This document shows positions 7,356 through 48,973 of a stretch of DNA of 64,000 nt, in pieces. Made by a program: the position numbers and the translations under genes. The notes below the pieces were generated by a model that ran no database searches, was not told the origin of the DNA, and saw only the letters and a list, made by a program, of their open reading frames with translations. Where the stretch lies: the sequence record PP695294.1. One strand, given 5' to 3'. The first letter of the stretch is position 1. The number at the start of each line of letters is the position of its first letter.

Positions 7356-8201
7356 ATGCCACTTTTAGCCACTGCTGAAAAGATTATTATCGCGGAGGTT
7401 AACGTCGAAAACAATCTCGATTTAAAAGTCGAAGATGTGGTTTTCGGTGTCCCTGCGATACCGACGTCTGACGAAGACCTGGCAAAAGCCAATGGTCATA
7501 ACGCGATGGTGCGCATTCAGGCTTTGGCCACCGCTAATGCTATCGGTGCCACTACCGTGTATTACGATCGTGTTGACTTCGCAGACATGTTTACCGACCC
7601 AGACGGGATTCAACCTCTACGTGTTCCTGCACGTCTCGACGCTGTTTACCAGATGCATGACGTGGTCGGGTTAATTAACCAGTATTACGGTCTCAGCCTT
7701 AAACCCGCAGATGTGGTGAATACCGAAATCGACAGGAAGACATGGCGTGTGGATCTGATTGCCACGCCCACTTCTTTAGGTTGGATAGGGCAACAACAGG
7801 TACAGCTGTTACCAGGCGATGCCTTGCTTCCTGCAAACTTCGAACCGTTAACAGTGACACCTTACGAGTATCCGTATTTTAACATCAAGGTCGGTCAAGG
7901 TGCAGTTTATTCGTATCCCTGGCGCTTTGATAATTTCGCGGAGGAATTTCAACGACTAGGTGCTGCGATAACCGCAGAACGTCTGGCGCAGATTCTCAAA
8001 ACGGTCACCGGTGATAACTGGACAACGTACCGTAACCCAATCGACTTTAACCTTCGTGAAGCTGTCGTCGTCTATAACGGGCGTAACAAAGCGGAATTAC
8101 CAACCAACCCAGCAGTCGACAACGTGCTGATTGTGGAGCTGTCGTTGTACTGTCTGAATTTTGGCGGGCGTTTGTATTTGCACTACAACGACCCTGATTA
8201 A
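7356..8201 (+). CDS. Virion structural protein, paralogue member 3
   Basis: YYDRVDF, INQYYGLSL, DFNLREAVVVYNG, GRLYLHYN. Confidence 0.8.
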   Translation: MPLLATAEKIIIAEVNVENNLDLKVEDVVFGVPAIPTSDEDLAKANGHNAMVRIQALATANAIGATTVYYDRVDFADMFTDPDGIQPLRVPARLDAVYQMHDVVGLINQYYGLSLKPADVVNTEIDRKTWRVDLIATPTSLGWIGQQQVQLLPGDALLPANFEPLTVTPYEYPYFNIKVGQGAVYSYPWRFDNFAEEFQRLGAAITAERLAQILKTVTGDNWTTYRNPIDFNLREAVVVYNGRNKAELPTNPAVDNVLIVELSLYCLNFGGRLYLHYNDPD

Positions 8202-8222
8202 TCCTGAGTAAAGGAAGTAAGA

Positions 8223-9134
8223 ATGAAACCTTTAAACAAAACGTCCGATCAGCTGGTTCTGGATTTTATTAATGAGAAAAACCCAGACGCAGAACTGGAA
8301 CTTTCTAAAATAACGCTCGGCACACCGACCCCTATTGTCGACGAAGGTGCCGATCGCAATACCAGCATGACCCTGACTGCGAAAAAGAACTCCGGGTACA
8401 TCGGTACTCAGGACGTGACTTATAATCGCCTGGAAGGCAGTGCGCTGTTCCGTAATGTAACAGCATACCTCGACGTTAAACTGCCGAAAACCACCACCGA
8501 CCTGCTGACGACCCTGAACACCCAATACGGATTGAAGCTGACCGAAGACGATATCGTTCCGGCGGCTATTCCGGAAAATACCAACCCACCGCTGACTAAC
8601 CCGAACGATCCGGACCCAGCACCGGTTGACCATGTCATTACCTTCAAAGAAGACTGCTATGCTTATCTGGGCAGCATCCCGGTTAAAATCGGTGCTAAGC
8701 CTCAGGTTGGTGAACGTCTGAGTCTGGTGGTAACACAAACCAAACTCGACGGCCTGGTTTACCCAGATGGTCCAAGCGATGCGAAAGGTCAGGGTTACAT
8801 CTACTCTTACGGTGTAGACTGCACAGCAATCGCAGCATTCCTGAAAGTGCAGGCGAAAGGCGTTATCGCTGCCGACTCTGCATTCCCGGTTGAGCTGAAT
8901 AAAGTTGTGCCGGAACTGTGGGTTGCATCTGATGAGCCTGCGGATTATAACCTGAAAGGTGCTAACGTGTTGTACGTTGGTTCTACTGCTGACGACGGCA
9001 CTGCTTCAGGCGACGATCCTAAGAAACCGGTTGAAGGTGCAAACACTGCTTACAACCAGGTTCTGCTGCTGCAGCTGGATGACACTCTGTGCACCAACTT
9101 CCAGGGCGTCATGTACCTGCACTTTAATGCCTAA
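8223..9134 (+). CDS. Virion structural protein, paralogue member 4
   Basis: LVLDFINEKNP, RNT, GYIG..YNRL, YNLKGANV, GVMYLHFN; closest to member 1. Confidence 0.8.
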   Translation: MKPLNKTSDQLVLDFINEKNPDAELELSKITLGTPTPIVDEGADRNTSMTLTAKKNSGYIGTQDVTYNRLEGSALFRNVTAYLDVKLPKTTTDLLTTLNTQYGLKLTEDDIVPAAIPENTNPPLTNPNDPDPAPVDHVITFKEDCYAYLGSIPVKIGAKPQVGERLSLVVTQTKLDGLVYPDGPSDAKGQGYIYSYGVDCTAIAAFLKVQAKGVIAADSAFPVELNKVVPELWVASDEPADYNLKGANVLYVGSTADDGTASGDDPKKPVEGANTAYNQVLLLQLDDTLCTNFQGVMYLHFNA

Positions 9135-9146
9135 TTAGGCCTCGCT

Positions 9147-9187
9147 GGGAGGAGGAAATCCTCCTCCTGGCTACTCCTTTCTTTTTT
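9147..9187 (+). terminator. Probable intrinsic terminator/attenuator
   Basis: GGAGGAGG-AAAT-CCTCCTCC stem with a T tract shortly after. Confidence 0.6.
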
Positions 9188-25648: not shown

Positions 25649-25694
25649 TTTAACGAGGAACTTGACGGGTTTAAAGCCTGAAGATAACCCATGC

Positions 25695-25727
25695 CCTCTT
25701 CCCCCACGGGGAAGAGGCTTTCTTTTT
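25695..25727 (+). terminator. Intrinsic terminator
   Basis: CCTCTTCCCC-CAC-GGGGAAGAGG plus T tract. Confidence 0.85.
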
Positions 25728-25754
25728 ATGACCCTATCAACTCAGGAGGTTATC

Positions 25755-26345
25755 GTGGTCGATCGTTGGAGTAAAGAGGGCATTATTCGTGCCAAAGTAA
25801 ACATCGAAGCCGGTTACGTTAATAACCCGAAAGATTTGGGCAAAGCAACGAACCGCGGTGTCACCGAACTCACTGCGCGCGAATATGGCTATAAAGGGGA
25901 TATGCGTGACCTGAGCTTAGAAATCGCGTTAGACATTTACAACAAGCTCTGGTGGCAGCGGATGCGTTTAGACCAGATTATGAAAATGAATGTCCTGCTA
26001 GCTGACCGAATGTTTGATTTCGGCATTAACGCAGGACGCGGTAACTGTATCAAGTCCCTGCAACGTATTCTGAACGTATTAAACCGTCAGGGTAAACTAT
26101 ACGATGATATCGATGCCGATGGTGGTATCGGGCCACGTACGTTAACAGCGTTAGAAGGCTTCATCAAAGCCCGTGGGGAAGAGGGCCTGAATCGACTGAT
26201 GTTCGCTTTAACCTGTCATCAGGTTGCGTACTACACGGAAATCAGTGAAGGGCGTGAGGATAACGAAGAGTTTACTTACGGCTGGTATGGCCGCGTCTAT
26301 CAGGAAATGCCAGACTACGTGGCTAAGTTGGGGATGTGCAAATGA
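25755..26345 (+). CDS. Glycoside hydrolase family 108 N-acetylmuramidase with peptidoglycan-binding C-domain (endolysin-like)
   Basis: EAGYVNNPKDLGKATNRGVT and MFDFGINAG motifs; DGGIGPRTL and F..GW..R tail; AGGAGG RBS before GTG 25755. Confidence 0.88.
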   Translation: MVDRWSKEGIIRAKVNIEAGYVNNPKDLGKATNRGVTELTAREYGYKGDMRDLSLEIALDIYNKLWWQRMRLDQIMKMNVLLADRMFDFGINAGRGNCIKSLQRILNVLNRQGKLYDDIDADGGIGPRTLTALEGFIKARGEEGLNRLMFALTCHQVAYYTEISEGREDNEEFTYGWYGRVYQEMPDYVAKLGMCK

Positions 26346-26443
26346 AACAGAATTGGTTTGCTGCCTTAATGAAAGCTATCTGGCGCGCCCTTGTTTTTGC
26401 CGCAAGGAGAAAACGTAATGACCCACCGTCCAACTCCGCCTAA
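26342..26443 (+). CDS. 33-aa amphipathic/basic micro-protein
   Basis: ATGA overlap with the lysin stop; MKQNWFAALMKAIWRALVFAARRKR... Confidence 0.45.
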   Translation: MKQNWFAALMKAIWRALVFAARRKRNDPPSNSA

Positions 26444-26570
26444 GTTCCCCGAAGTACAAACCGTTCCGGAAACGTATTACGATTCTGGGTTCTTCAAACT
26501 ATTACGCGCGATCTTCTGTCGGAGGGTAAAGCCATGCAATACGACAACGACGACTGGCCGAAAGGCTTAA
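26418..26570 (+). CDS. 50-aa micro-protein
   Basis: AAGGAG RBS; MTHRPTPPKFPEVQTVPETYYDSGFFKLLRAIFCRR... Confidence 0.5.
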   Translation: MTHRPTPPKFPEVQTVPETYYDSGFFKLLRAIFCRRVKPCNTTTTTGRKA

Positions 26571-26626
26571 TGCCCATTTTACTGGGATTAATGGTCCTCA
26601 CGATGCTCGTGCGTTATATGACGTGA
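26534..26626 (+). CDS. 30-aa single-TM micro-protein
   Basis: GGAGG RBS; MQYDNDDWPKGLMPILLGLMVLTMLVRYMT. Confidence 0.55.
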   Translation: MQYDNDDWPKGLMPILLGLMVLTMLVRYMT

Positions 26627-26633
26627 GGTCAGT

Positions 26634-27275
26634 ATGGAAGCACTTAAGTATACGTTGTTAGAGAAGCCGTGGTTTATCCTCACGGATGATTTCCATTTCG
26701 AGTTTACGTTGCGCAGCCTCTATCGTGAACAGACCGGAATGGATGCGATGGTAGCATTAGCAGGTGTGCATCCGGATACCCCGTTATGGGTAACGGTACC
26801 GAGAGGATTTGTGACGGACCTGGCAAGCATTCCAGAAGCGTTACGTCCTATCCTGCATCCGGATGGGCCTTGGGCCGCTGCCGCTTGTGTGCATGATTTG
26901 TTTTACCAGAAACGTTCATCGGTAGGCTTTTACCCTGACACTGTCGAAGGTAATCTATCTCGTGCATGTGACAAAACATTCGCTGACCTGATGTTCTTAC
27001 GTATCATGGAGGCATTAGGCGTTGATACCTTTATTCGTAAGTCCTTCTACCATGCCGTTCACGAGTTTGGTTGGCCGTCCTATGTAGACGATAACTCTAA
27101 GGTGGTTTATAGCCGGCCGGTAGAAAAGACGTTGTCCTATAATCGCAACTACCTGTTCTTTAGAACGTCGCGTACGTTAGCGATTCCTGAACACGAACGT
27201 GTTGACATTACTAATGGGCAACCGGTAAACGTGCAGTATTTGAATATCAAACGTGCGTTCCTGACTACCCCTTAA
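26634..27275 (+). CDS. DUF1353 domain protein
   Basis: VPRGFVTDLASIP and W..AA.VHD.FY signature. Confidence 0.85.
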   Translation: MEALKYTLLEKPWFILTDDFHFEFTLRSLYREQTGMDAMVALAGVHPDTPLWVTVPRGFVTDLASIPEALRPILHPDGPWAAAACVHDLFYQKRSSVGFYPDTVEGNLSRACDKTFADLMFLRIMEALGVDTFIRKSFYHAVHEFGWPSYVDDNSKVVYSRPVEKTLSYNRNYLFFRTSRTLAIPEHERVDITNGQPVNVQYLNIKRAFLTTP

Positions 27276-27284
27276 GGAGAGAAA

Positions 27285-27800
27285 ATGTTTCATCCGAATC
27301 CTGCCAACTTCGCGTTAAAAGAGTTGATGCCGCAGGAGTACATCGCGAAATACGGTGAAGGTGCTATTCGTTTCCTTAATCCGTTACTGCTAATCTCGCT
27401 CCAACAGATTCGTAATCGTTTTGGGCGGATGGTGATTTTAACCAGTTCCCAGCAACAGCGTAGTCTGCGTACCCTGCAGTTCTTTATTAATCAAGAGAAA
27501 CCAAAGGGTGGAGATTGGCAAACTCGTGCAAACAAACTGTACGCCGAATCAGGCAGTATGCATAAATTCGGTAATGCGTTTGATGCAACAATGCTTGATA
27601 CTCCGTTGCAGAAAGTACACGACTATATTGCCGCGAACCCTAACGAGTTTCCGTTTATTCACTTTATCGAGTGCGATATTACCTGGCTGCATGTTGACGT
27701 ACGCAACCAGCCTGATATCACCTTCTGGTCACCGACACGTGGTACCGTTAAAGTGGTTAAGCAACAACTCATCGATTGGAGCAAGCTGGTTAAAATCTAA
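27285..27800 (+). CDS. Peptidase M15 family Zn peptidase (peptidoglycan hydrolase)
   Basis: SMHKFGNAFD (H-x6-D) and WLHVDVR zinc-ligand motifs. Confidence 0.8.
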   Translation: MFHPNPANFALKELMPQEYIAKYGEGAIRFLNPLLLISLQQIRNRFGRMVILTSSQQQRSLRTLQFFINQEKPKGGDWQTRANKLYAESGSMHKFGNAFDATMLDTPLQKVHDYIAANPNEFPFIHFIECDITWLHVDVRNQPDITFWSPTRGTVKVVKQQLIDWSKLVKI

Positions 27801-28539: not shown

Positions 28540-29067
28540 ATGGCAGTCATCTCTGCAAAAGACCAACTCGTTGCGCTGTTTAATGCTGCAAACAGCGGAC
28601 TGTCTAGTCCGTTAACTTCTGCTGACGTTACATTCGGCGCTGTTGCTGACTATTCACCAGCAGATTCTGGAGACACCCGCAACTCCAAACTCACCATCAC
28701 TGCCACCGCGGAATCCGCTAACTTTACTGGCGAGAAAGAGCTGCATTATACCCGCCTCGATTCATCGAACATCATCGGTGCGAAAGCAGTTACCGCTGAC
28801 CAGGCAGAATGGGATACCGATGAAGAAGTGCTTGCTTTTGTCAACGCAGATCTAATTGCCGCCGGTAAAACGGAAGATGCGTTTGCATTGTCTGAACTCA
28901 CCATTTCACGCGAGGACGGCGACAGTGGTGAGAAAATCATCACTGTTATGGTGAAAGAAGGCCACATTAAATACCAGCCTGCCAGCCTTGCAGTTTATAC
29001 TGTAACGCAGCCAATCGTTAAAACTGACCTGAGCACCACCAACGGTGAACTGGACGGATTCGTTTAA
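28540..29067 (+). CDS. Single-domain virion protein of the paralogue family
   Basis: LVALFNAAN, RNSKLTIT, FTGEKELHYTRL; ends NGELDGFV; TATG upstream at about 28506. Confidence 0.8.
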   Translation: MAVISAKDQLVALFNAANSGLSSPLTSADVTFGAVADYSPADSGDTRNSKLTITATAESANFTGEKELHYTRLDSSNIIGAKAVTADQAEWDTDEEVLAFVNADLIAAGKTEDAFALSELTISREDGDSGEKIITVMVKEGHIKYQPASLAVYTVTQPIVKTDLSTTNGELDGFV

Positions 29068-29091: not shown

Positions 29092-29146
29092 AAATAAATA
29101 AAAGGTACCTACCTCCCCGAAGGGAGGTAGGGCCTTTATTTTCTTT
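29092..29146. terminator. Bidirectional intrinsic terminator
   Basis: CCTACCTCCC-CGAA-GGGAGGTAGG flanked by A and T tracts, between convergent genes. Confidence 0.85.
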
Positions 29147-29148
29147 GC

Positions 29149-29820
29149 TTACATGCCGAGTGACTCGGACAATGTTTTTAATCCAGTGTAATCGCGCTTT
29201 TCAGCCAACTCACGGATTTGGCGTTTGTTATCTGCCATTGCTGAGTGCAACACTTGGTCACGTGCAACAATAGCGGCCAACAACGCTTTACATTGGTCTA
29301 CTGTAAACGGACTGTGCTTAGTATTCAGCGTATCGAGCCAGTATTCTGGTGCGGTATCCGCCTGAATATATTGACCGAGGATGGTACGCGACGATTCATC
29401 GGCTTGAAAGTGACTACCTTCAAACTCGATATAACCATGGCGCTCATCTTCGTAGCGGTGGTCGAGTTCCAACAGCATCTTCTGCACGTCTTCGTAAATG
29501 TAACGTGCGGTAGATTTCAGATTCCCGCGAATTTCGTCGAGGTCAATCTCCAGCACATTAGCAATAAACTCTTTCGTGCGTTTCAATGTGAAGTTAGCTT
29601 CAATCTCCGACATCTCATACAGCTTCATGCGTGCCAGGGCTTCTTTATCAGACATCCCTTCGATGAGATGGTAATGGAGTAATGCACAAAATCCGGTACG
29701 ACCCTGATCCTGCGCACCGATTCGTTCCATGAAATTACCGTGACGATCAATCGGCAAATCACGCTGGAAATAACGGGCGCGGATCTCTTCGTTCGTTAAG
29801 CTTTTGTCAGTAACAGACAT
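29149..29820 (-). CDS. DUF4376-like tail-fibre-associated protein
   Basis: C-terminal IEFEGSHFQADESSR..YWLDTLN..FTVDQCKALLAAI resembles DUF4376. Confidence 0.65.
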   Translation of the reverse strand: MSVTDKSLTNEEIRARYFQRDLPIDRHGNFMERIGAQDQGRTGFCALLHYHLIEGMSDKEALARMKLYEMSEIEANFTLKRTKEFIANVLEIDLDEIRGNLKSTARYIYEDVQKMLLELDHRYEDERHGYIEFEGSHFQADESSRTILGQYIQADTAPEYWLDTLNTKHSPFTVDQCKALLAAIVARDQVLHSAMADNKRQIRELAEKRDYTGLKTLSESLGM

Positions 29821-30362
29821 TCGTCCTCCTCAATCAGGCCAAGTTCTAACAACAAACCGAAGTCCAGCATCTGGAAGTCCTGATCGAGGTTACCGGCCCA
29901 CAACAGAGAAATGTTGTGTTGCTCTTCTTCTTCCAACTGCGGGAGCAGGTGTTCTTCGAAGATTTGACGCTCTGTGTAATAAGCGTCAACCGGGTTATTG
30001 GAGCGTAAGTTACGAATACGCATCCGCGGGAATGACAAGCCCAATGCCACTAAACTTTCAGGACTGGCTTCATCAATAGAGTGACGTAGCAGTTCGATTT
30101 TGTGGCGTGGGTATGCAAGCAGTCGCTTCTCAAAGCCAGGGTTGCGCTTTTCGATTTCCGCGACAGACTCGTGTCCTTTCTCAACGCAGTAGACCGGGAT
30201 CATCACATTCAGCCCGTATTTAATCAACAGGCTTTGGATTTCATCAGTGAAGTCTTCCCCTGCCACAATTGCGTGCACATTGTACAGCTTGCTTTTGCGC
30301 AGGAAGCGATCGACCAAGTGCAGTTTACGCTTCGTAAAATTGTGAATCAGTATTGACTTCAT
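29796..30362 (-). CDS. Hypothetical protein of the radical SAM module
   Basis: GGAG RBS before ATG 30362; overlaps both neighbours. Confidence 0.75.
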   Translation of the reverse strand: MKSILIHNFTKRKLHLVDRFLRKSKLYNVHAIVAGEDFTDEIQSLLIKYGLNVMIPVYCVEKGHESVAEIEKRNPGFEKRLLAYPRHKIELLRHSIDEASPESLVALGLSFPRMRIRNLRSNNPVDAYYTERQIFEEHLLPQLEEEEQHNISLLWAGNLDQDFQMLDFGLLLELGLIEEDECLLLTKA

Positions 30363-31653
30363 TCTGGGCTCCGTTTTGTAATTTTTCTGCTTCGGCACGT
30401 TGGCGTACACAACGTGAACAATAGCACATGGATTTATCATGCAAATCTGATGCGCGAGTCGTACCAGTTTTCTGATACCAATATTCCGCCGCCATCAGCT
30501 TCGCAGTAGTCCAACCACACTGACGACGCTCGGCGTGATACGCTTTACGGTCTTCCAGTGTACCTTCACCGTTTTCGTACGATGCTGCTGCGCAGCTACC
30601 GCAGCTGTGTTTCATCGGACACCCTAAACAGGTTTCTGGGTAGTTGGTGTACTGCGTTTGAATCTCTTCTAACAGCTTACCGCCGTCCAGGCTCACAAAC
30701 TCACGACCGACCAGTTCCGCTACAGCAGAGCGGGAAGTTACCGTGGACATGAAACGGTTACAACCGTAAATCTTGCGATCAAAGCCGAGACAGGTCATGT
30801 GCGTCAACGTACCGCAGTACGGTTTCAGGCGTTCTGGGTCGAGACGAACAGAGTCGTCGTGTAAGAGTTTGTCACGCCAATCCGGGTCCCAAGTTGCCAT
30901 AAAGTTCAGGCCATCCGGGATGATGTGTGTAATCGTGTTACGCGGGTTGGTGTGCAGACCCTTCTCAATCCAGTAGTCCATCACGTCCATCATCTGGTTC
31001 GCGATATCCAACGCCATATGGCGCGGCAGGATATCTTCGTACGTTACATTACCAGAAATGGTACCACCGCCGGACATGTCAATTAACGATTTCATGCTGG
31101 CGGCATAGTGCGGCAATGTATCGATCGTAAACGTCGCTTTTACGCCCAGTTCAGCGATGCCAACACTCTTCAGATAATTGTAACCGCGTACCGCAGCTTC
31201 GTACGACCCTTCACGCGTCGTGGTAAAGATACGATATTTGTCATGGACTTCAGGTAAACCATCGATGGAGACCCCAATAGACAGTTTGTCTTTCCAGCGC
31301 TCGATAATTTCTTTGTTCAGCGGACGGTCCAGAAGCGTACCGTTCGTGGAGATACTGAACATATACGGGCGATTGTGTTCTGCGCATAACTTCTCTGCGG
31401 TTTCAAAGGCCGCCAAAAGAAGTTTAGGCTGCATGAACGGCTCACCACCGATGATATCGATGATGACTTCAACGTTCGGGATATCTTTATCACGCTCGAA
31501 ACAAGCGTGGATAAAATCAATCACGTCTGCTACTTTGTTGTTACGCGGATATTTACGCTCGTAGCAGTATTCGCAGTCCAGGTTACATGACAAGTTAGTC
31601 ACAACCTGATATGTGCGTGGTGTGTACTGGATTTGCTGTTCGCTATTACTCAT
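30325..31653 (-). CDS. Radical SAM/SPASM-domain peptide maturase
   Basis: CNLDCEYC, GGEPF, STNG, SIDG; auxiliary C..DRKIYGC..CLGC-x5-C-x2-C..C plus CYCSRC. Confidence 0.92.
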   Translation of the reverse strand: MSNSEQQIQYTPRTYQVVTNLSCNLDCEYCYERKYPRNNKVADVIDFIHACFERDKDIPNVEVIIDIIGGEPFMQPKLLLAAFETAEKLCAEHNRPYMFSISTNGTLLDRPLNKEIIERWKDKLSIGVSIDGLPEVHDKYRIFTTTREGSYEAAVRGYNYLKSVGIAELGVKATFTIDTLPHYAASMKSLIDMSGGGTISGNVTYEDILPRHMALDIANQMMDVMDYWIEKGLHTNPRNTITHIIPDGLNFMATWDPDWRDKLLHDDSVRLDPERLKPYCGTLTHMTCLGFDRKIYGCNRFMSTVTSRSAVAELVGREFVSLDGGKLLEEIQTQYTNYPETCLGCPMKHSCGSCAAASYENGEGTLEDRKAYHAERRQCGWTTAKLMAAEYWYQKTGTTRASDLHDKSMCYCSRCVRQRAEAEKLQNGAQNEVNTDSQFYEA

Positions 31654-32560
31654 TGTTCGCCGCCCGTTTACGCTTAGCAGAAATTACACGGTTGATGTAG
31701 TTATACGCATCAACGCCGATAGAACGCGCCAGGCGATTACAGCCGACTTCCAATATCTCTGGGGCGTTCTGAATTTGCTCCTGCGTACCGTCGGCGTTAA
31801 GCCACAGCACTTCACTGCACGTGTTGCACTCGGTATCGAACATTTTACTGATCGCAAGCCCACATTCAGAATCGTTCTGCATGTTAAGGCGTTCGATATT
31901 GTCGAGTATTTTCCAATACCCGTACATGAAGTTCATGACGTGGTCTGGCGATAACGGTTTCGGCATCATCGCATCAAACAACAACGACACACCACCTGGA
32001 CGGTAATGATAGATTGCTCGGTGCAGCTCGATGAAATCTTCGTACCAGCGTTTATCGCCTAACTGGTCACGCGTCATCACACCCCAGGTGTAATAATTGT
32101 CCAGCTCGTACAGCACTTCCAGCGCTTCGTGATTACCACCGTTTACAAAGTTCATAAACGGACGTTCCGACTTCTTGTAGCCGTCAATGGACACAAAGAT
32201 AAGGTCGAACTGTTTCAGCAACGGCAGATGTGATTTACGCATCTTTAAACCGTTGGTGTACATGTGATGACGGAGGTTCGGATGAGACTCCTTCAACTCG
32301 TTCACGAAGTCTTCAATCTTACGCTGCGCTAACAGCGGCTCACCGCCCGTCCAATGAATCTCACCGATATCCGGATTCTTCTCTAAAATCGAGAGAATCT
32401 CTTCACGTTGAAACTCACGAGAAGTATCTTCTCTATCCATGTAATAAGCCCCTCCACAGAAGCTACAGTCTAAGTTACACTTAGAAGTTGCGACAACCGA
32501 CAGAATTGACGGTTTGTCGTACAGTTCAGACGAGATCCTGGATTCTACTTGATCTGTCAT
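31646..32560 (-). CDS. Second radical SAM enzyme (short, Twitch-like C-terminus)
   Basis: CNLDCSFC, GGEPLL, YTNG, SIDG; C-terminal CNTC..ADG..GC; GGAG RBS before ATG 32560. Confidence 0.88.
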   Translation of the reverse strand: MTDQVESRISSELYDKPSILSVVATSKCNLDCSFCGGAYYMDREDTSREFQREEILSILEKNPDIGEIHWTGGEPLLAQRKIEDFVNELKESHPNLRHHMYTNGLKMRKSHLPLLKQFDLIFVSIDGYKKSERPFMNFVNGGNHEALEVLYELDNYYTWGVMTRDQLGDKRWYEDFIELHRAIYHYRPGGVSLLFDAMMPKPLSPDHVMNFMYGYWKILDNIERLNMQNDSECGLAISKMFDTECNTCSEVLWLNADGTQEQIQNAPEILEVGCNRLARSIGVDAYNYINRVISAKRKRAANNE

Positions 32561-32582
32561 TGCAGGTTGCTCCAGTATATTT

Positions 32583-33470
32583 TTAAATATAATCAATGGC
32601 GAATAAAGGATCTTCGTCTACGTTAGCGCCAGGCACCAGTAACATCGGGTCGTGATAGGCAGCTAAAATTTTGTTCAGGTCGGCGTGTCTTTCGTTCAGA
32701 CGTTTCAAATCGGCCAACGTTACCGAACGACCACGAATCTCAGAAACAGCTTCTGCTTCTTCTTTCGTTAAATCCACCTTCGTTAAGAGGAAACTTACCA
32801 GCTTACTCAAATCCGCTTCTGTCGCCGGGTAATCCCCATATCGAGTTTGAACCAGGTGTTGCATCCACGGCTTACGAATACGTTTGGTGATTTCAAAATC
32901 GTCAGTCAGCGCATACCAGACAGAACGCTTTTTATCCCACACGAACTTATAGCTATACGCCATCATGTCCGCTAAACGGGTGATGCCGAGTTCTTTATAC
33001 CCCTCGATATCGATGTATGGTTCGGTGTCGAAATACGTTTCCGTATCGGCAGGTACCAGTACAAAGTAGTAAGGGAACGAGCCCAGATAGTCCGGACTCC
33101 ACCAACGGCGCGCCATCGGTTTTGCTTCAAGTTCGTCAAACGGTGTAAACATCAGTTCTAAATCGACGCTGTTGTTCAAAATCCCTTCACTGAAGAAATA
33201 CTTACCGTCGACTAACACGCCACGAGAGTTACCATCGCCGTTAAAGATAACGATGGCCTCTGCAACCATATCACGGATCTTAAACGTATTTTCTACGGTG
33301 TAGTTCTTCTTGTCGGTCAAGAAGCGACCACGAACCTTTGGCCACTCACCAGGAATCTGTGCAATCAGTCTGACTTTGTCAGCGAGATGTGCACGCACCG
33401 AATCTGGGGAAGATAGATGCAGCGGGTGGTTGAATGTGGTTTTATACGCAAGATGCAAATCGTTTTTCAT
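32583..33470 (-). CDS. Hypothetical protein of the radical SAM module
   Basis: 295 aa with GGAG RBS, between the Cys-rich peptides and the radical SAM genes. Confidence 0.8.
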   Translation of the reverse strand: MKNDLHLAYKTTFNHPLHLSSPDSVRAHLADKVRLIAQIPGEWPKVRGRFLTDKKNYTVENTFKIRDMVAEAIVIFNGDGNSRGVLVDGKYFFSEGILNNSVDLELMFTPFDELEAKPMARRWWSPDYLGSFPYYFVLVPADTETYFDTEPYIDIEGYKELGITRLADMMAYSYKFVWDKKRSVWYALTDDFEITKRIRKPWMQHLVQTRYGDYPATEADLSKLVSFLLTKVDLTKEEAEAVSEIRGRSVTLADLKRLNERHADLNKILAAYHDPMLLVPGANVDEDPLFAIDYI

Positions 33471-33492
33471 TTAATACTCCGAACGTTTTCTG

Positions 33493-33699
33493 TTATCGAT
33501 TCCCCGCTCCACGGCTACAGCTTCCGCTGCAGGACCAGCTACACCCACCATTACAGTTATAGTGAGAAAGCGGTAAGCCAGCCAGGTTATTTGTGGTCGA
33601 CACGGTGCCCTGGTTAGCGATATAGTTGTTTGCCTGTGCGGTTGTAATGTAACCTTCTGCCGTAACGAGACGGTTTCGAATAGTCTTGAGACTGATCAC
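33493..33699 (-). CDS. Cys-rich precursor-like peptide 3 (4 Cys)
   Basis: GGAGG RBS; leader like peptides 1 and 2; core NCNGGCSWSCSGSCS. Confidence 0.8.
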   Translation of the reverse strand: MISLKTIRNRLVTAEGYITTAQANNYIANQGTVSTTNNLAGLPLSHYNCNGGCSWSCSGSCSRGAGNR

Positions 33700-33714
33700 A
33701 TAAGCCTCCGTCAG

Positions 33715-34119
33715 TTAGGAGTTAGGACCTGAACAACCACCAGAGCACGCACCTGAGCAGTTTGCGGAGCAGGATTTACCACAACCCCCAGAACAGCTGC
33801 CTGTGCACGTGCCGCTACAACCACCAGAGCACGAAGAGCTACAGCCCGTGCAGCTGCTGCTACAGCCTGATACACAGTTTGCCGAACAAGTCGACCCACA
33901 ACCACCTGTCGCAGACCCTGTGCAGCCGCCAGAGCAACTTGAGCAGCTAAAAGAACACGTACCACCACAGTCGTAGTGCGAACGACCTTGACCTGCGAAC
34001 AAGTCAGCGTTATTCGTAGCTTTATTGCGAATGTAGTTTTGCACATTCGTGGTATTCTTTAGAGCGTTTGCATCGATCGTGTTTAATCGGTTATTCAGTT
34101 CTTTTAATCCAATTGCCAT
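33715..34119 (-). CDS. CxxxC-repeat Cys/Ser/Gly precursor-like peptide 2 (20 Cys)
   Basis: About 50-aa leader, then DCGGTCSFSC and a run of CxxxC repeats. Confidence 0.9.
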   Translation of the reverse strand: MAIGLKELNNRLNTIDANALKNTTNVQNYIRNKATNNADLFAGQGRSHYDCGGTCSFSCSSCSGGCTGSATGGCGSTCSANCVSGCSSSCTGCSSSCSGGCSGTCTGSCSGGCGKSCSANCSGACSGGCSGPNS

Positions 34120-34129
34120 TTAATCCCCC

Positions 34130-34522
34130 TTAGCGACCTGAACAGCCGCCGGAGCAGGCCCCGGAACAACTGGAAGAACATGAGCCACCGCAACCACCTG
34201 TGCAGTTACCGGTACAGCTACTACTGCAACCACCAGAACAACCAGAGCAACCAGAACAGTTACCGCCACACGTCGAAGAACAGCTACCGATACAAGAAGC
34301 AGAACAGCTTCCTGAACAGCTCGAACAGCCATGCGAGCAACCGTTAGAGCACGTCCAAGAACACGTCCCGCCGCAATCTAGCTGTGTTTTCGTCCAACCC
34401 CCAAATCGGTCTGCCGCGTTATGGGCTTTAGAGGCCACTTGCGCGTCGATACGGGGGCCTGTCGCCATGTTAGCTTCGACTATCTGGACGCGGTTTCTGA
34501 CGTCTTTAATAGATATCGCCAT
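34130..34522 (-). CDS. CxxxC-repeat Cys/Ser/Gly precursor-like peptide 1 (21 Cys)
   Basis: AAGGA RBS; about 49-aa leader, then DCGGTCSWTC and CxxxC repeats. Confidence 0.9.
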   Translation of the reverse strand: MAISIKDVRNRVQIVEANMATGPRIDAQVASKAHNAADRFGGWTKTQLDCGGTCSWTCSNGCSHGCSSCSGSCSASCIGSCSSTCGGNCSGCSGCSGGCSSSCTGNCTGGCGGSCSSSCSGACSGGCSGR

Positions 34523-34543
34523 TACGCTTCCTTAAAAAGTAGA

Positions 34544-34580
34544 ACGAGCGGACTATGTCCATAAACATAGTCCGGCTCGT
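34544..34580 (-). terminator. 15-bp bulged hairpin: terminator, attenuator or processing site ahead of the Cys-rich genes
   Basis: ACGAGCGGACTATGT/ACATAGTCC(G)GCTCGT; on the minus strand followed by TCTACTTTTT. Confidence 0.55.
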
Positions 34581-34587
34581 AAACAAG

Positions 34588-35790
34588 TTACTTAGTACCC
34601 GCTTCAGCTTGAACATCGTCGCGCGAGGTGAGGTTGTTGTTAACGTGAACAGCAGCCTGCACAACACCGCCATACTGTTTATGGAGGTAATTCGGGTGTG
34701 GGTTATCCGCAGCCGCATGGTTCGCCAGATTCTGGTTTGCCTGCGAAATTGCGTTGGTGTTGTTTACAACCTGAGTTTTAAGACTGTTGATTTGTCCTTG
34801 CAGGTTATCAATTTGCTGTTGGAAGTCTTTGCCCTGATTCTCAAGATCCGTGACACGCTGATTTGTTTCATTCAGCGCAGACTGAAGATCGTTAACCTTC
34901 TTCTGTAATTGCAACACCAGAGAATTAAGGTTAGCTAATGCTAACGACATTTTCTGGTAATTTTGAGCAACTACATTAAGCTGGTCGTTCCACGCGGCTA
35001 ACGAAGCCACAACTGCATCGATGCGTTGCCCCAACGCCGTGTCTGCTGCTCTTAAGTCGCCGATATCTTTGATAGTGGCGTCAATGGCAGTCTGTACACT
35101 TTGAATCAGGGCACGAATCTCCGTCTCCGTCAGGCCATTAACCTGATGAATGTCGAGATTGTGTACGTTACCTTCGGCGTTGATGTGTGTATTTAAGGCG
35201 TCGAGGAAGTCGTTTCTCAGACCGTCCAGAATACCTTTAATTTCTTCCAGCTGTACTGCAGAGCCGGAGTTAATCGCATCTTTAATCCCCGCGAGTACGG
35301 TAATGATATACTCAAAACCGTAGATATCGCCAAGGTCTTTATACGTCGGGGCGGACGGGAACGTATCGGGTACGTTTCGAAGATCCTTGAAGTCCACCAC
35401 ACGGTCTTCAATTTTCAGCGACGCAATCGCTTGTCGGATGCCTTCGACGTTCGCGGACTGAAAACCACCAACGACTTGCGCAGAGACTTCGATATCAGTA
35501 GGAATGGCCGAGTTAGTTACCACCACACCCATGACCACTTCGCGGTTCTTGGTCATTTTCTGATATGCAGTATGTGCAAAAATCAGTTCGTAGTCTGTGC
35601 CGCGTTTGTACGGGTAGACACCTGGTTTATTCGCAGCTGCCAAGCGGAAGGTATCCGCGTAGAAAGCTCCGTCAGGAAAAGCAAAAGCCCGGTTAACTTT
35701 ACCAGAACCTAACGTAATACGCCGTGTAACGGCGTTCGACGTTAATGTCCCGGTAAGGTCGAGCGGGTACTGATGAATGATTTCGGCCAT
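34588..35790 (-). CDS. phiKZ gp131-like tail-fibre protein with long coiled coil
   Basis: YPLDLTG..FY..GTDY N-domain; heptads; C-terminal H...NPHPNY motif; AGGAG RBS before ATG 35790. Confidence 0.75.
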   Translation of the reverse strand: MAEIIHQYPLDLTGTLTSNAVTRRITLGSGKVNRAFAFPDGAFYADTFRLAAANKPGVYPYKRGTDYELIFAHTAYQKMTKNREVVMGVVVTNSAIPTDIEVSAQVVGGFQSANVEGIRQAIASLKIEDRVVDFKDLRNVPDTFPSAPTYKDLGDIYGFEYIITVLAGIKDAINSGSAVQLEEIKGILDGLRNDFLDALNTHINAEGNVHNLDIHQVNGLTETEIRALIQSVQTAIDATIKDIGDLRAADTALGQRIDAVVASLAAWNDQLNVVAQNYQKMSLALANLNSLVLQLQKKVNDLQSALNETNQRVTDLENQGKDFQQQIDNLQGQINSLKTQVVNNTNAISQANQNLANHAAADNPHPNYLHKQYGGVVQAAVHVNNNLTSRDDVQAEAGTK

Positions 35791-35837
35791 TGCCAAACTC
35801 CTTTGATTGGGGCTTCCTTGCCCCATAGCGCTATCTG

Positions 35838-41040: not shown

Positions 41041-41081
41041 TAATAAAACGGAGACCGCCCTCCCAATAACGGAAGGGCGGT
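41041..41081 (-). terminator. Probable intrinsic terminator
   Basis: Minus strand ACCGCCCTTCC-loop-GGGAGGGCGGT followed by CTCCGTTTTATT. Confidence 0.55.
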
Positions 41082-45259: not shown

Positions 45260-48200
45260 TTAATCACGAATAATAAGTGTTCGAGCTGACGTGTTTTTCG
45301 GATTGAACGTCATCATCTTGGATGGGTGCGCCGCCGGTGGAATTTTACCTGTATCCACTGGTCGGAACGAACTGTATGAATAGTTGCACATCGCGCTGTT
45401 CATCTCATTAATCGTTGAACCTGCATCCACCACGCCAGTAAAGAATCTTGCGCGGTTTAAGCCGGAATAGTTAATCGCATAGTCAAGGAACGTGGCGTAA
45501 TAACGATTCTTCATCGGCATCGAATTCAGGTTAGCGTAAGTCAAACGCGCTTCTGTGTCGGAACTAAACAAACCACCCACGCCGTGATAAATCGGCGTAC
45601 TCGGATCGGTAATCAGTTTCGTCAAGTCGATATAGTCAGGACGGAGACGAGTAGACAAATCCTCAGTCCACGACTCGCCGGTCGACTGCAAGGTGTATTT
45701 CAGCGTCTTTGTTGTCGCGGTTAGCGTCAGCTCAAAGTTAATCGTTTTGGAATCGATGTTAATCGTTCCCACGAACGAAATACCGTCCGCTGTTCGTGTG
45801 TGGCTGAAACGCACCGATGGATTAAGTGCCGTCCAGTCATGGCCGGAACCAGTAACGCCGTTCAAGCCAATAACAACCTGCGCAGCACGTCCGTAGTTAA
45901 CCGCGATTCCCGCATACGTGCTCACGCCGCCTGGAGTGGTAATACGCCCTGCGGTGCGTGCGACGAGTACAGAAATACGGTGCATGAACGTGGCCGAGTG
46001 ATGGCAACACCCAATTACCGTTTCTAGCACACTGTCCGCTGTTGCGGTTAAAGGTGTCCACGTTGCGGTAATGCCGTTATTCTGGAACATCGGGAATGTG
46101 TTGTGGACAAAACGATAGTCGGTTACAGATAAACTGGTTGTTTTAAACGTCCATTTATCAGCAGCCGGATCGTAGTCCGCTTTCAACATAGGCGTATAGC
46201 TGCTAGCCTGCGCGTAACGCCAATCGGCATCTATACGTTTTGTACCTGGTGCACCCGTGGACCACACAGGCCCGCCCGTACCGTAAGTAAATCCGAAATC
46301 AGCTTGCGTCATGCCCCGACGAATATGGGCGTTATCATCCTCGATATGCTCGCCTAATTCACGGAACTCACCTAAACGCGTCACGTTGCGGATTTCTACA
46401 AAAACCACACCGGTTTCACTGGTGACGATGGAACCTATTTTGGTCATCGTCTCAGTTTCTGCCGTGTTTGGATTTTCGTAGATAATGTACTTGCCATCAT
46501 CGCCCGCCGCGTCAACATACACGCCAAACTCAGCATCTTCGTGCGTCGCTGGGAATAGCTCCGCCAAGTTAAATGTGGAGAGAGGTACTTTGTACTCGCG
46601 ACCAACGAAATAATCGTTCGCTTTAATAGTAACCATCCAGTCGGTGTAAGTGATGCCGTTTTCAATGATATCCGTGCCGGGTAAACCGTAACGAATAATG
46701 TTGATTGAAGCACCAGAGTCGACTGTCTTCGCAACCTTCTCTATCTCTGTGATGGCGTCCGCCTGTCGGATGACCTCACCGCCGTCTAATGCCAGCGTGG
46801 CATCGTCAACCGCGGTGCCGAACTGTACTAAACCGAACTCCGTCGTTGCTGCACGCTTAATCCCGAACGCAGCAGAAGTGTGTGTGTGACCGACGACTGC
46901 ATACTTGTCCAGCTCAGCTTGTTGGAGCGGGGAAATCGGCAATTGTACATCTGGGATGTTCTGTACGTTCGATAAGCCGAAGTTAGTTTTATCGATGTAA
47001 ATAGAACTCGTCAGTGGCATGTCGTTGATGTACGATTTAACGGCAACCAACTTGCCCGTAAACTGCTGATCCAATTTCTTGATGAGTGCCGGCGTTGCGG
47101 CCAAGTCCTCACGATCACCGAATTCAGTAGCCAACAAACGGACAGCCATCAGGCCAAGGTCGTCGGACTCCGGTGGAACAAAAGTACAAATGAACGGAAC
47201 AGACTGAATACCGTTACCGTTAATGGTTACAGTAGCTGTGGATGTTCCGTAAAACAGTCCATCACCACCTGATTCGTTACCCGGCAGGTACGGCCCGACC
47301 GTAGTAGGGTCCAACAGTTTCTTACCGTTGAACTCCAATCCACGGGAATCCGGATAAAGGATGAGCTGGTTAGCCCCACTTTGCCATGTAATCGGGTTGT
47401 TCCCGGCGTTAACGGTTTGCGAATCGCGTCCAATAAAACGGATAACCCTCGGGTCAACCGTGAATTGTGCACCCACGCCTTCAGACTCATCGGTACCCAC
47501 TGCTGACGTTATTGAAGTCAGGCCAGGCTTCATGCCGAACGTGCCGTTGATAGACTGTGCAGCCGTCGGTAAGCGTAAAAGCTTATTCGCCAGCGTTGAC
47601 AGTTTCGGCAACAGATTGTTAACGTAATCTGTCAGCTGCGGTTGCGTTTTTCCGTATACCAGTGTCGCGTCCGAAGCAATACCGTTATTCTCCAAAGCAC
47701 GGATTGCGCCCCACGAATCGCGATGCGGGTTATCCTTGCGCGGCACGTGTGTGTGTGCCGGTGCATCACGGTACAGTTTATCGACAATCTGGTGATATTT
47801 TACCAGCAGCTGGTACACGTCATTGTTAACGTCAGGTGCCGGTGCGCCTGGTAATGAACGAATCTGGACGTAATCGTTCTCACCTGCCCACCAGTTTAGG
47901 TTGACGTCCGATTTAAACTTCAACCATTTTGCGACATCAGTTTTCTGATACCCTGGTGCAAATTCGCTCGGCGGGTTGTCAACGTTAAAGCTGTAGTTAA
48001 CGGTTTGCTTGCTTGTTTTAACGGTAATGTCGTAAACGCCGTTACCTTCGCGTCTGACCACGCTAAGCTCAATATCACCCGCCAACTCGGTATCGGTCAG
48101 GCCAGTCGTCAACGTATAGCTGTAATTAGACGAACCAGAACCAATCGCCGTCGTTAAGGTAAGATAAATCGCGCGTTGCTTCAACTGAAGACGCAGGATA

Positions 48201-48973
48201 CTTGTCCCACCGTTAGCGTAACAGAGCATCCAATCGATCAACTCGCCTGGACTCAACGTTGTTTCCGGTGGAATGCTCGGTAAACGGTATTTTGCCGCTA
48301 ACGAATACGCACCGAACGTCGTGTTCTGGTAAGATAACGAATAACGACGACGCGACGCGTTATACGTGTAGCCGCCAGTACCGTCGTACGTCGCATACTG
48401 CTCGGATGTGATAAGCGTGACACCGGCGCGATATTGAAGGTCTAACGTGTTACGAGCAATCGGGTCAACGCGACTGATCGCTTCACCGAGCTTAGCACCA
48501 ACCGCAACAATGGCTTCCATCAACTCGGATTCGCCACGCCAGTTTTCCCAGTCGAACTTAATATCGACCGGTGGGAAATATAAATCCCCAATGACGTTAT
48601 CCCATTGGCAGTCCACGGGATAGCGATCTTTATTCGCTTCTCGTTCTGCGGCGATCATTTCTGCAGTGGCTTCACCGATGCCAATTGCGTGGTAATCGAG
48701 TGTAAAGCCACTCTGATATTTCGGGTTGGTAATCCACACGCCGCCGTGACAAACATGGCCAGTGCGTGCCATGCCCGTAACGTACGCATGGGTGATGACG
48801 TAATCATCACCTAATGTTAATTTCTTGCCGCCACTCTTGACCACCAGGGATGTGGTATAAAAGGGGGCGTGTGCGGGGAACAGCATCCGGTACTTAGTAC
48901 CGATCGGCGTTGCCGCTTCACCGGTCTGCATATTCCCCGGTTCTTGATAGTGCGGGTCAGGGACGACAGCCAT
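45260..48973 (-). CDS. Large gp131-like tail-fibre/virion protein (1237 aa)
   Basis: HAPFY..LTLGDDY N-domain; NPH, LSNVQN.PD..LP.S, HTHT fibre motifs. Confidence 0.8.
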   Translation of the reverse strand: MAVVPDPHYQEPGNMQTGEAATPIGTKYRMLFPAHAPFYTTSLVVKSGGKKLTLGDDYVITHAYVTGMARTGHVCHGGVWITNPKYQSGFTLDYHAIGIGEATAEMIAAEREANKDRYPVDCQWDNVIGDLYFPPVDIKFDWENWRGESELMEAIVAVGAKLGEAISRVDPIARNTLDLQYRAGVTLITSEQYATYDGTGGYTYNASRRRYSLSYQNTTFGAYSLAAKYRLPSIPPETTLSPGELIDWMLCYANGGTSILRLQLKQRAIYLTLTTAIGSGSSNYSYTLTTGLTDTELAGDIELSVVRREGNGVYDITVKTSKQTVNYSFNVDNPPSEFAPGYQKTDVAKWLKFKSDVNLNWWAGENDYVQIRSLPGAPAPDVNNDVYQLLVKYHQIVDKLYRDAPAHTHVPRKDNPHRDSWGAIRALENNGIASDATLVYGKTQPQLTDYVNNLLPKLSTLANKLLRLPTAAQSINGTFGMKPGLTSITSAVGTDESEGVGAQFTVDPRVIRFIGRDSQTVNAGNNPITWQSGANQLILYPDSRGLEFNGKKLLDPTTVGPYLPGNESGGDGLFYGTSTATVTINGNGIQSVPFICTFVPPESDDLGLMAVRLLATEFGDREDLAATPALIKKLDQQFTGKLVAVKSYINDMPLTSSIYIDKTNFGLSNVQNIPDVQLPISPLQQAELDKYAVVGHTHTSAAFGIKRAATTEFGLVQFGTAVDDATLALDGGEVIRQADAITEIEKVAKTVDSGASINIIRYGLPGTDIIENGITYTDWMVTIKANDYFVGREYKVPLSTFNLAELFPATHEDAEFGVYVDAAGDDGKYIIYENPNTAETETMTKIGSIVTSETGVVFVEIRNVTRLGEFRELGEHIEDDNAHIRRGMTQADFGFTYGTGGPVWSTGAPGTKRIDADWRYAQASSYTPMLKADYDPAADKWTFKTTSLSVTDYRFVHNTFPMFQNNGITATWTPLTATADSVLETVIGCCHHSATFMHRISVLVARTAGRITTPGGVSTYAGIAVNYGRAAQVVIGLNGVTGSGHDWTALNPSVRFSHTRTADGISFVGTINIDSKTINFELTLTATTKTLKYTLQSTGESWTEDLSTRLRPDYIDLTKLITDPSTPIYHGVGGLFSSDTEARLTYANLNSMPMKNRYYATFLDYAINYSGLNRARFFTGVVDAGSTINEMNSAMCNYSYSSFRPVDTGKIPPAAHPSKMMTFNPKNTSARTLIIRD

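Follow-up and report, generated by a model that had tools for sequence, protein, structure and literature searches.

A module of radical-SAM and cysteine-repeat genes behind jumbo-phage tail fibres and its candidate role in fibre maturation

What do two radical S-adenosylmethionine (radical-SAM) enzymes do at the end of a run of tail-fibre genes in a giant Salmonella phage? Radical-SAM peptide chemistry has been studied almost solely as a route to antibiotics and cofactors. The locus was analysed in a 64,000-nt stretch of sequence record PP695294.1, referred to as the window; coordinates are window positions unless a locus number (L) is given. Over positions 29149-35826 the sequence matched Salmonella phage 1252 (PP695294.1) at 100% identity. 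Identity to SPN3US, a jumbo myovirus and the type phage of Seoulvirus, was ~98.5%, and SPN3US gene numbers were therefore transferred to the window. The block from gp168 to gp161 is read here as a late tail-fibre operon, the second half of which would be a maturation system for a cysteine-repeat fibre element. Three proteins with runs of the motif C-x-x-x (CXXX), named A, B and C, would be fibre-associated structural elements whose cysteine runs are cross-linked by radical-SAM enzymes. Taken as a whole, this explanation is held to be somewhat likelier true than false. Phages would then probably finish a part of the virus particle with chemistry of the peptide-antibiotic type.

Cysteine-repeat genes and radical-SAM enzymes in one block

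The block runs along the minus strand in the order gp170 (45260-48973), gp169, gp168, gp167 and on to gp161. Downstream of gp167 it contains three CXXX-repeat genes, a gp165-like gene, two radical-SAM genes, a gp162-like gene and a DUF4376 gene, all on one strand and tightly spaced (Table 1). An earlier reading made from the sequence only had placed the peptide genes in continuation of the tail-fibre operon, after gp167 and in the same orientation, and all of these genes were found there on the minus strand. The last gene, gp161, had been called DUF4376-like, and PF14301 matched it at 38.1 bits (cut-off 25) over residues 121-205.

Each of the three CXXX genes is preceded by a Shine-Dalgarno site, and intergenic gaps are 10-65 nt. 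Protein A consists of a 49-aa N-terminal region followed by an 81-aa Cys/Ser/Gly core. The cores of A, B and C contain 21, 20 and 4 cysteines, respectively, are ~80% Cys/Ser/Gly, have no Asp or Glu and, except at the end, at most one Lys or Arg. A four-residue spacing of the cysteines holds for 36/42 intervals (A 17/20, B 16/19, C 3/3). Against the TIGR04114 repeat model (cut-off 20 bits) A scored 19.6, B 17.1 and C 13.7 bits, and precomputed PF27846 matches were listed for distant homologues of protein A, faint where rated. The family of all three, phrog_6085, carries no assigned function, and no Pfam family was found for A, B, C, gp165 or gp162. The leader helices quoted as heptad-like in the sequence-only reading were present verbatim, with hydrophobic residues spaced 3-4-3, but this spacing is kept for no more than about two heptads. 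In A and B the first Cys is preceded, 8-10 residues earlier, by a Gly-Gly or Ala-Gly pair.

Because Cys-rich sequence leaves several frames open, the reading frame was tested. In comparisons with six relatives the Cys-rich frame was under purifying selection in N-terminal region and core alike (pN/pS, the ratio of nonsynonymous to synonymous differences, 0.11-0.72), with synonymous sites near saturation (pS 0.6-1.0). An artefact of GC-rich repeats was ruled out by this codon-level selection together with the Shine-Dalgarno sites. A tandem-repeat finder reported almost no tandem repeat at the DNA level, and no recent one, so the periodicity is upheld at the level of protein.

Seoulvirus, Machinavirus, Wellingtonvirus and Derbicusvirus all have the same set of three genes, two for long proteins and one for a short protein. 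Protein C is conserved across four genera and is down to 2 Cys in three genera. The first motif is the most conserved part: the two Cys, the intervening Gly and the Ser that comes next were kept in 19/19 leaders compared, and the residue after this Ser was Trp in 17 leaders and Phe in 2. This conservation is consistent with a key recognition or modification site, which the first motif may be. A profile of the leaders gave only 27 matches against 1.84 billion representatives. A long match to this profile, P0086, was discarded as spurious (a calcium-binding-repeat protein), and another, P0095, was marginal. P0008 has a longer N-terminal region ahead of the same module, with a gp164-like gene after it.

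The larger enzyme, gp163, carries the CX3CX2C cluster motif (C23, C27 and C30) and seven SPASM-type auxiliary-cluster cysteines (C280, C298, C342, C345, C351, C354 and C379), all invariant in the alignment. Its top NCBIfam match was the CXXX-repeat maturase TIGR04115 (125.6 bits, cut-off 350), followed by PapB (113.6 bits, cut-off 340). It aligned over its full length with a true TIGR04115 member, that of locus L009 (389.2 bits; 23% identity over 407 aa, E 4e-24), and the nearest solved structure by sequence was CteB (5WGG/5WHY). Its adjacent CXXX-repeat targets would be the three genes upstream, given as 1-3 genes away. The pairing of enzyme and substrate is drawn from the strict co-occurrence of the two gene types.

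The start of the second enzyme, gp164, is uncertain, and the GenBank record uses 32560. Homologues were found in loci L024, L022 and L008, and in L023 (9137-11197, on a 284-kb viral contig) a gp164-like radical-SAM domain is fused to a gp163-like SPASM enzyme in one 686-aa protein, which suggests that the two window enzymes may act as a pair. Paired enzymes with more than one substrate recur in a second lineage, on a 246-kb viral contig (L090 7414-14281), where two radical-SAM genes (373 and 603 aa) are followed by CXXX proteins of 551 and 421 aa.

The gp165-like gene is invariably located between the substrate gene and the SPASM enzyme. A confident AlphaFold2 (AF2) model of gp165 (pLDDT 90) had no match outside its own family in a fold search of PDB and BFVD, and no match was obtained in a sequence search of solved structures. 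The AF2 model of gp162 (pLDDT 89.6) is a beta/alpha partial barrel that weakly resembles radical-SAM cores (SkfB, TMq 0.54; also ChlB and QueE) and partial TIM barrels. With only 2 Cys and no cluster motif, gp162 may, on this model, be a degenerate radical-SAM-like paralogue, and nothing is built on this here. Both gp162 and gp161 are confined to the SPN3US-like clade.

The repeat in tail fibres and tail modules of other phages

Viral contigs were scanned with an alignment of the SPASM enzyme, giving 198 confirmed relatives, and the best 80 of these were retained. Among these 80, the relatives of gp163 closest outside the SPN3US clade (30-34% identity) were those of loci L021-L024. None of the four has a separate peptide gene; instead, a tail fibre encoded two or three genes upstream of the enzyme ends in a CXXX run, which makes up its last 40-120 residues. 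The L022 fibre (8031-9185) has a P2-type N-terminal domain (PF12571 Phage_tail_fib, E 1.8e-40) and directly follows Baseplate_J and Tail_P2_I genes, and the L021 and L023 fibres matched many PHROG tail-fibre families. The fibre C-termini of L023 and L024 were matched by phrog_6085 itself (E 2.7e-7 and 4.3e-12). In 4/4 of these loci a gp165 homologue adjoins the SPASM enzyme, with the fibre gene on its other side.

The leader profile of the window proteins also matched residues 274-311 within the collagen-like fibre of L024 (E 1.9e-8), and the window leader is for this reason taken as a probable remnant of a fibre shaft. Because the repeat is fused to fibres in all four loci, the SPN3US-type CXXX proteins are read as detached fibre tips; A, B and C would be separate versions of the domain that forms the C-terminal tip of the fibre in the related phages. 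A regular expression for a fibre-type motif that the leaders and the big window fibres might have in common matched only protein B and the L021 fibre, and the motif was dropped as evidence.

The placement of the module was surveyed in 160 loci, dereplicated at 80% enzyme identity. A CXXX open reading frame (ORF) lies beside the related radical-SAM gene in 72 of the 80 viral loci. Dereplication left 40 lineages with a CXXX ORF, three of which look like a bacterial small-peptide type, leaving 37. At least 27 of these 37 have a baseplate, fibre or tape-measure gene within four genes (25 by cluster annotation, plus the SPN3US-like L020 and L017 with a tape measure), so that the module is not found away from fibre genes in most homologous loci. 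In 17 lineages a fibre-like gene is directly upstream of the CXXX gene. The commonest order is Baseplate_J, DUF2612, a ~370-aa fibre-like protein, the CXXX protein, a ~194-aa protein, a ~100-aa protein and the enzyme. Three types of tail were represented, the Baseplate_J/DUF2612 myovirus type, the siphovirus type with tape measure, Dit, Tal and collagen fibre, and the jumbo-phage type. Substrates have a median length of 253 aa (typically 125-660 aa in the relatives), and the repeat is C-terminal in 38/52. Two clusters of the ~100-aa proteins of TIGR04115-type loci proved to be one family by profile-profile comparison.

A 226-aa distant homologue of protein A was located inside the tail module of a prophage, in the order tape measure, Sipho_tail, Prophage_tail, 1373-aa collagen fibre, 226-aa CXXX protein, two small proteins, TIGR04115 enzyme (389 bits), holin and endolysin. 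On a ~178-kb human-gut phage contig (L015 10001-15730; also L016) in-frame TAG codons are present in the CXXX gene (2), the radical-SAM gene (3) and the endolysin gene (8), and PhoH and gyrase B have none. In recoded gut phages in-frame TAG marks late genes, and the pattern suggests that amber recoding in L015 is confined to late genes, the CXXX and radical-SAM genes included.

Among 50,697 GenBank phage records the system was restricted to SPN3US-like phages and a small number of unannotated gut contigs, and the genome collection held only ~16 near-full-length relatives, mostly in assemblies of Clostridia and Margulisiibacteriota. Four loci from termite-gut bacteria (L099-L102, Margulisiibacteriota/Termititenax) have CXXX proteins of 495-667 aa beside SPASM enzymes of 399-409 aa; their neighbours could be assigned neither as phage nor as non-phage.

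The functional tie to tail fibres put forward in the sequence-only reading is borne out by the placement of the module in most lineages and by the fusion of the CXXX run to fibres in L021-L024, and the association of the module with fibres is strongly indicated by these comparisons. A broader claim is that tails of the myovirus, siphovirus and jumbo types share a widespread class of fibres with a cysteine-repeat rod at the end, stapled covalently by radical-SAM/SPASM enzymes ahead of assembly, and that TIGR04115/TIGR04114 serve mainly in virion maturation and not in a natural-product pathway; it is advanced more tentatively, as one that falls a little short of even chances.

The same genes could instead encode precursors of a diffusible ribosomally synthesised and post-translationally modified peptide (RiPP), such as a bacteriocin, a signal, a metal chelator or an anti-defence peptide; the leader would be cut off, the cross-linked core would be freed at lysis and have bacteria as its target instead of the virion, and the place in the operon would provide late timing only. 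Such a product would suit the leader-plus-core layout, the Gly-Gly/Ala-Gly pair before the first Cys of A and B, the absence of gp161-gp165 from virions and the enzyme family, which is otherwise known from RiPP maturases. Three bacterial loci (L103, L112 and L114) pair CXXX peptides of 72-88 aa with radical-SAM proteins of 710-728 aa, beside other large genes and with no phage genes recognised nearby; they look like a separate, more conventional RiPP-like branch. Against a diffusible product, the nearest relatives carry the repeat as part of their tail-fibre proteins, and substrates in relatives reach 660 aa. The protein C homologue of a 222-kb SPN3US-like metagenomic contig (P0073, L180 8001-8633) has 210 aa, with ~140 extra beta-rich C-terminal residues after the Cys motif, a domain that matched no family and no solved structure by sequence. 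Pfam, NCBIfam and PHROGs revealed no leader peptidase, transporter or immunity gene in gp161-gp165, and neither did fold search of gp165 and gp162; a TIGR04115-type locus likewise had no peptidase or transporter in its precomputed Pfam annotation. A RiPP recognition element was not detected either, although absence by these methods is not proof. A lytic jumbo phage, moreover, leaves no lysogen to benefit. A diffusible RiPP is considered unlikely on this balance. The RiPP framing of the sequence-only reading calls for revision: the products are 68-134 aa long, their leader is homologous to a fibre shaft in relatives, and they differ from classical short RiPP precursors.

Partner protein, cross-link chemistry and known systems

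Proteomics of SPN3US virions detected gp167, gp168, gp169 and gp170, which were not listed among the head proteins; gp168-170 were described as the phiKZ gp131-like 'paralog family C' and as baseplate or fibre candidates, and the 86 virion proteins included none of gp161-gp166 (PMC5694885; PMC5105663). gp165 and gp161 are thus both on the undetected side of this list (PMC5694885; PMC5105663).

The gene directly ahead of the CXXX genes, gp167, matched phrog_2163, a virion structural protein family (E 1e-108), with coiled-coil matches at residues ~230-370. Residues 49-215 aligned with residues 47-206 of gp169 (E 1.8e-7), and this N-terminal domain also matched Goslar gp25, a Peptidase_S74 fibre. 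The sequence-only reading had called gp167 a gp131-like coiled-coil fibre; the coiled coil was confirmed, and likeness to gp131 applies only to the N-terminal domain. A search of solved structures by sequence gave only coiled-coil noise for gp167. Full-length gp167 was present in 64 phage records and the radical-SAM gene likewise in 64. This equal distribution, together with adjacency, suggests gp167 as a candidate partner of the CXXX proteins.

CXXX proteins might also be assembly aids, that is, a Cys-rich clamp or template for the trimerisation of gp167-170 that is then discarded, comparable to intramolecular chaperone domains or separate fibre chaperones. The Goslar homologue of the gp167 N-terminal domain ends in a Peptidase_S74 chaperone domain that gp167 does not have, DUF4376 and PHROG 'tail assembly chaperone' genes are nearby, and CXXX proteins have not been reported in virions. 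Known helpers of fibre maturation (Peptidase_S74, separate chaperones, DUF4376) resemble the window genes in lying directly after fibre genes, in being needed to finish the fibre and in being absent from the virion, as gp161-gp165 are from SPN3US virions. Known helpers, however, fold or trimerise fibres without covalent chemistry, whereas those of the window include two radical-SAM enzymes. It is hard to see why an element that is to be discarded should receive a costly radical-SAM modification. In the fused fibres no protease domain was detected beside the repeat, which leaves no evident mechanism of removal, and absence by mass spectrometry is uninformative in this case. The assembly-aid reading is accordingly held to be improbable.

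For the preferred explanation, in which A, B and C stay on the fibre, the following steps are proposed. The N-terminal part, a short amphipathic helix and a fibre-shaft-like stretch, would hold the protein in the fibre or baseplate assembly, most plausibly with gp167, on which the helix may dock or trimerise, as the sequence-only reading had it for the fibre end. The C-x-x-x run would be the substrate of gp163, acting together with gp164 and the gp165-like protein, and would be cross-linked in the cytoplasm, before assembly. Its many thiols would be converted to intramolecular carbon-sulfur (thioether-type) cross-links. The expected product is a redox-insensitive, protease-resistant rod or knob on the virion, which may serve in adsorption or stability. 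Thioether chemistry is suggested by analogy with the nearest characterised relatives of gp163, and CrpA/CrpC would be a precedent of protein size.

Alternatively, the cysteines could remain free and coordinate metal, whether Zn, Fe or an Fe-S-like array, along the axis of a trimer, with the enzymes modifying only the invariant first motif or some other target. The reduction of protein C to 2 Cys in three genera, with the first motif always kept, would fit such an array, as would the absence of an Asp/Glu acceptor from the core; other phages are known to have metal ions on the axis of their fibres. Long CXXX runs, however, co-occur strictly with SPASM maturases of the thioether-forming group, and free thiol arrays would be expected to oxidise outside the cell. 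A metal array is regarded as very unlikely.

The closest known system is TIGR04115/TIGR04114 (PF27846), in which a SPASM radical-SAM enzyme is likewise found beside C-x-x-x repeat proteins and true members too sit in phage tail modules. It differs in its accessory genes (~194 aa and ~100 aa, as against gp165, gp164, gp162 and gp161), for which profile-profile comparison with the window accessory proteins gave no homology, and in substrate N-terminal regions unrelated to those of the window. No characterised product of this family, and no published link to phage tails, was found in the literature.

PapB (freyrasin) and CteB (SCIFF) belong to the same enzyme group and also act on Cys-rich repeated motifs. 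The peptides that they modify are short, with acceptors of the Cys-x3-Asp/Glu type or Thr. The PapB-type motif, Cys-x3-Asp/Glu, does not occur in the window cores. CteB-type enzymes have an N-terminal recognition domain, whereas the cluster motif of gp163 starts already at residue 23, with no N-terminal extension able to hold one. Enzymatic covalent cross-linking of virion parts is rare, and capsid chainmail is autocatalytic.

A protein-sized substrate has been described in Methanococcus voltae, where a SPASM enzyme makes thioether cross-links in a 29-kDa Cys-repeat protein (CrpA/CrpC; PMC13692751). That system resembles the window in its full-size substrate with a conserved N-terminal region and C-terminal Cys repeats, and in paralogous substrates that share the N-terminus (PMC13692751). 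It differs in enzyme family (TIGR04463), in its 17-residue repeats with C-x-x-Q/D, and in being archaeal, with a suggested role in metal handling and no virion context (PMC13692751). No paper linking radical-SAM enzymes to tail fibres, or treating the CXXX-repeat family experimentally, was found in a literature search that left most subscription journals uncovered and is not proof of novelty.

Several points weigh against the explanation preferred here. By the curated TIGR04115 cut-off gp163 is not a member, its score being far below it, and is to be regarded as a distant relative. The cores lack Asp and Glu, which excludes an acceptor of the PapB type. gp167 peaked in the gel slice that held other 45-52 kDa proteins in the SPN3US virion proteomics, and a covalent adduct of gp167 with a peptide is for this reason unlikely. 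Proteins A-C are not among the 86 SPN3US virion proteins; this absence says nothing, because the annotation lacked or misframed these ORFs and the cores, with at most one tryptic site, would yield no useful tryptic peptides. In ~10 lineages the neighbouring genes could not be annotated. The fibre-lysis junction of temperate phages is a hot spot for cargo genes, so placement in siphovirus-type prophages is weaker evidence than the fusions. Finally, gp165 and gp162 provided no functional clue.

Boundaries, neighbouring genes and annotation

The features of the block are summarised in Table 1. Matches to sigma-70-type promoters in the window were fewer than expected by chance; such scarcity is unsurprising in a phage with its own polymerases.

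Table 1. Features of the gp168-gp161 block, with misannotated ORFs at related loci (window positions unless a locus is named).
Feature	Position	Strand	Evidence or remark
gp168-like large fibre/baseplate protein, 1742 aa	35838..41066	-	ORF; = SPN3US_0168; head of block
gp167-like fibre protein, 400 aa	34588..35790	-	phrog_2163; gp131-family N-terminal domain and coiled coil
CXXX-repeat protein A, 130 aa, 21 Cys	34130..34522	-	phrog_6085, E 9e-41
CXXX-repeat protein B, 134 aa, 20 Cys	33715..34119	-	phrog_6085, E 3e-41
Short CXXX protein C, 68 aa, 4 Cys, GTG start	33493..33699	-	phrog_6085, E 2.7e-24
gp165-like accessory protein, 295 aa	32583..33470	-	phrog_8030, E 3e-150
Radical-SAM enzyme 2, gp164-like, ~304-316 aa	31646..32596	-	PF04055, E 1e-15; Fer4_12
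Radical-SAM/SPASM enzyme 1, gp163-like, 442 aa	30325..31653	-	PF04055, E 9.6e-15; TIGR04115 top NCBIfam match
gp162-like protein, 188 aa	29796..30362	-	phrog_7988
DUF4376 protein, gp161-like, 223 aa, final gene of block	29149..29820	-	PF14301, E 2.4e-9; phrog_8169
Bidirectional terminator-like hairpin closing the block	29108..29131	.	10-bp stem, 7 G-C pairs, T tracts on both strands
Terminator-like hairpin at 5' end of gp168	41054..41081	-	12-bp stem, 8 G-C pairs
Wrong-frame or antisense ORFs over long CXXX genes	L001 16562-16897; L004 6377-6589; L005 6224-6985; L006 6135-6956; L007 6256-6993		

Two endolysin-like genes (phrog_315 and phrog_894) around a PHROG 'tail assembly chaperone' gene (phrog_1158) occupy 25662-27800 on the plus strand, between the head-paralog block and the fibre block. 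Past the terminator the first gene is gp160 (28540-29067, plus strand, 175 aa), whose product ranks among the most abundant 'head' proteins of SPN3US. In L180 (13044-14179) its positional equivalents carry DUF7941, for which a fibre cloud at the peripheral baseplate was proposed in a 2026 Goslar preprint, in conflict with the head assignment of gp160; the DUF7941 link was made through these positional equivalents and not through the window protein itself.

The CXXX genes have largely been missed in existing records. In the SPN3US records A and C are unannotated, and SPN3US_0166 ('gp166') is a wrong-frame ORF over B, equal to window 33711-34046 (minus strand). The phage 1252 record (PP695294) annotates only protein C and omits A and B. 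In the CR5, Kwan, Phobos and Huxley records antisense or wrong-frame ORFs are placed over the two long CXXX genes. The reference annotations of SPN3US-like phages, a group that includes biocontrol agents under development, thereby gain three real genes.

On the broader claim made above, a structural protein of a virus would for the first time be known to undergo post-translational modification by radical-SAM enzymes, and SPN3US-like phages would be the sole cultured models for stapled fibre tips. If phage fibres are finished in this way, an orphan maturase family, itself predicted in silico, would gain a function. Genome mining would call for caution, because some clusters of 'RiPP/ranthipeptide-like' appearance in the genomes of Clostridia and in gut metagenomes may be prophage tail modules. 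Such fibre maturation would also account for the two radical-SAM genes in the fibre operon of giant Salmonella, Erwinia and Cronobacter phages.

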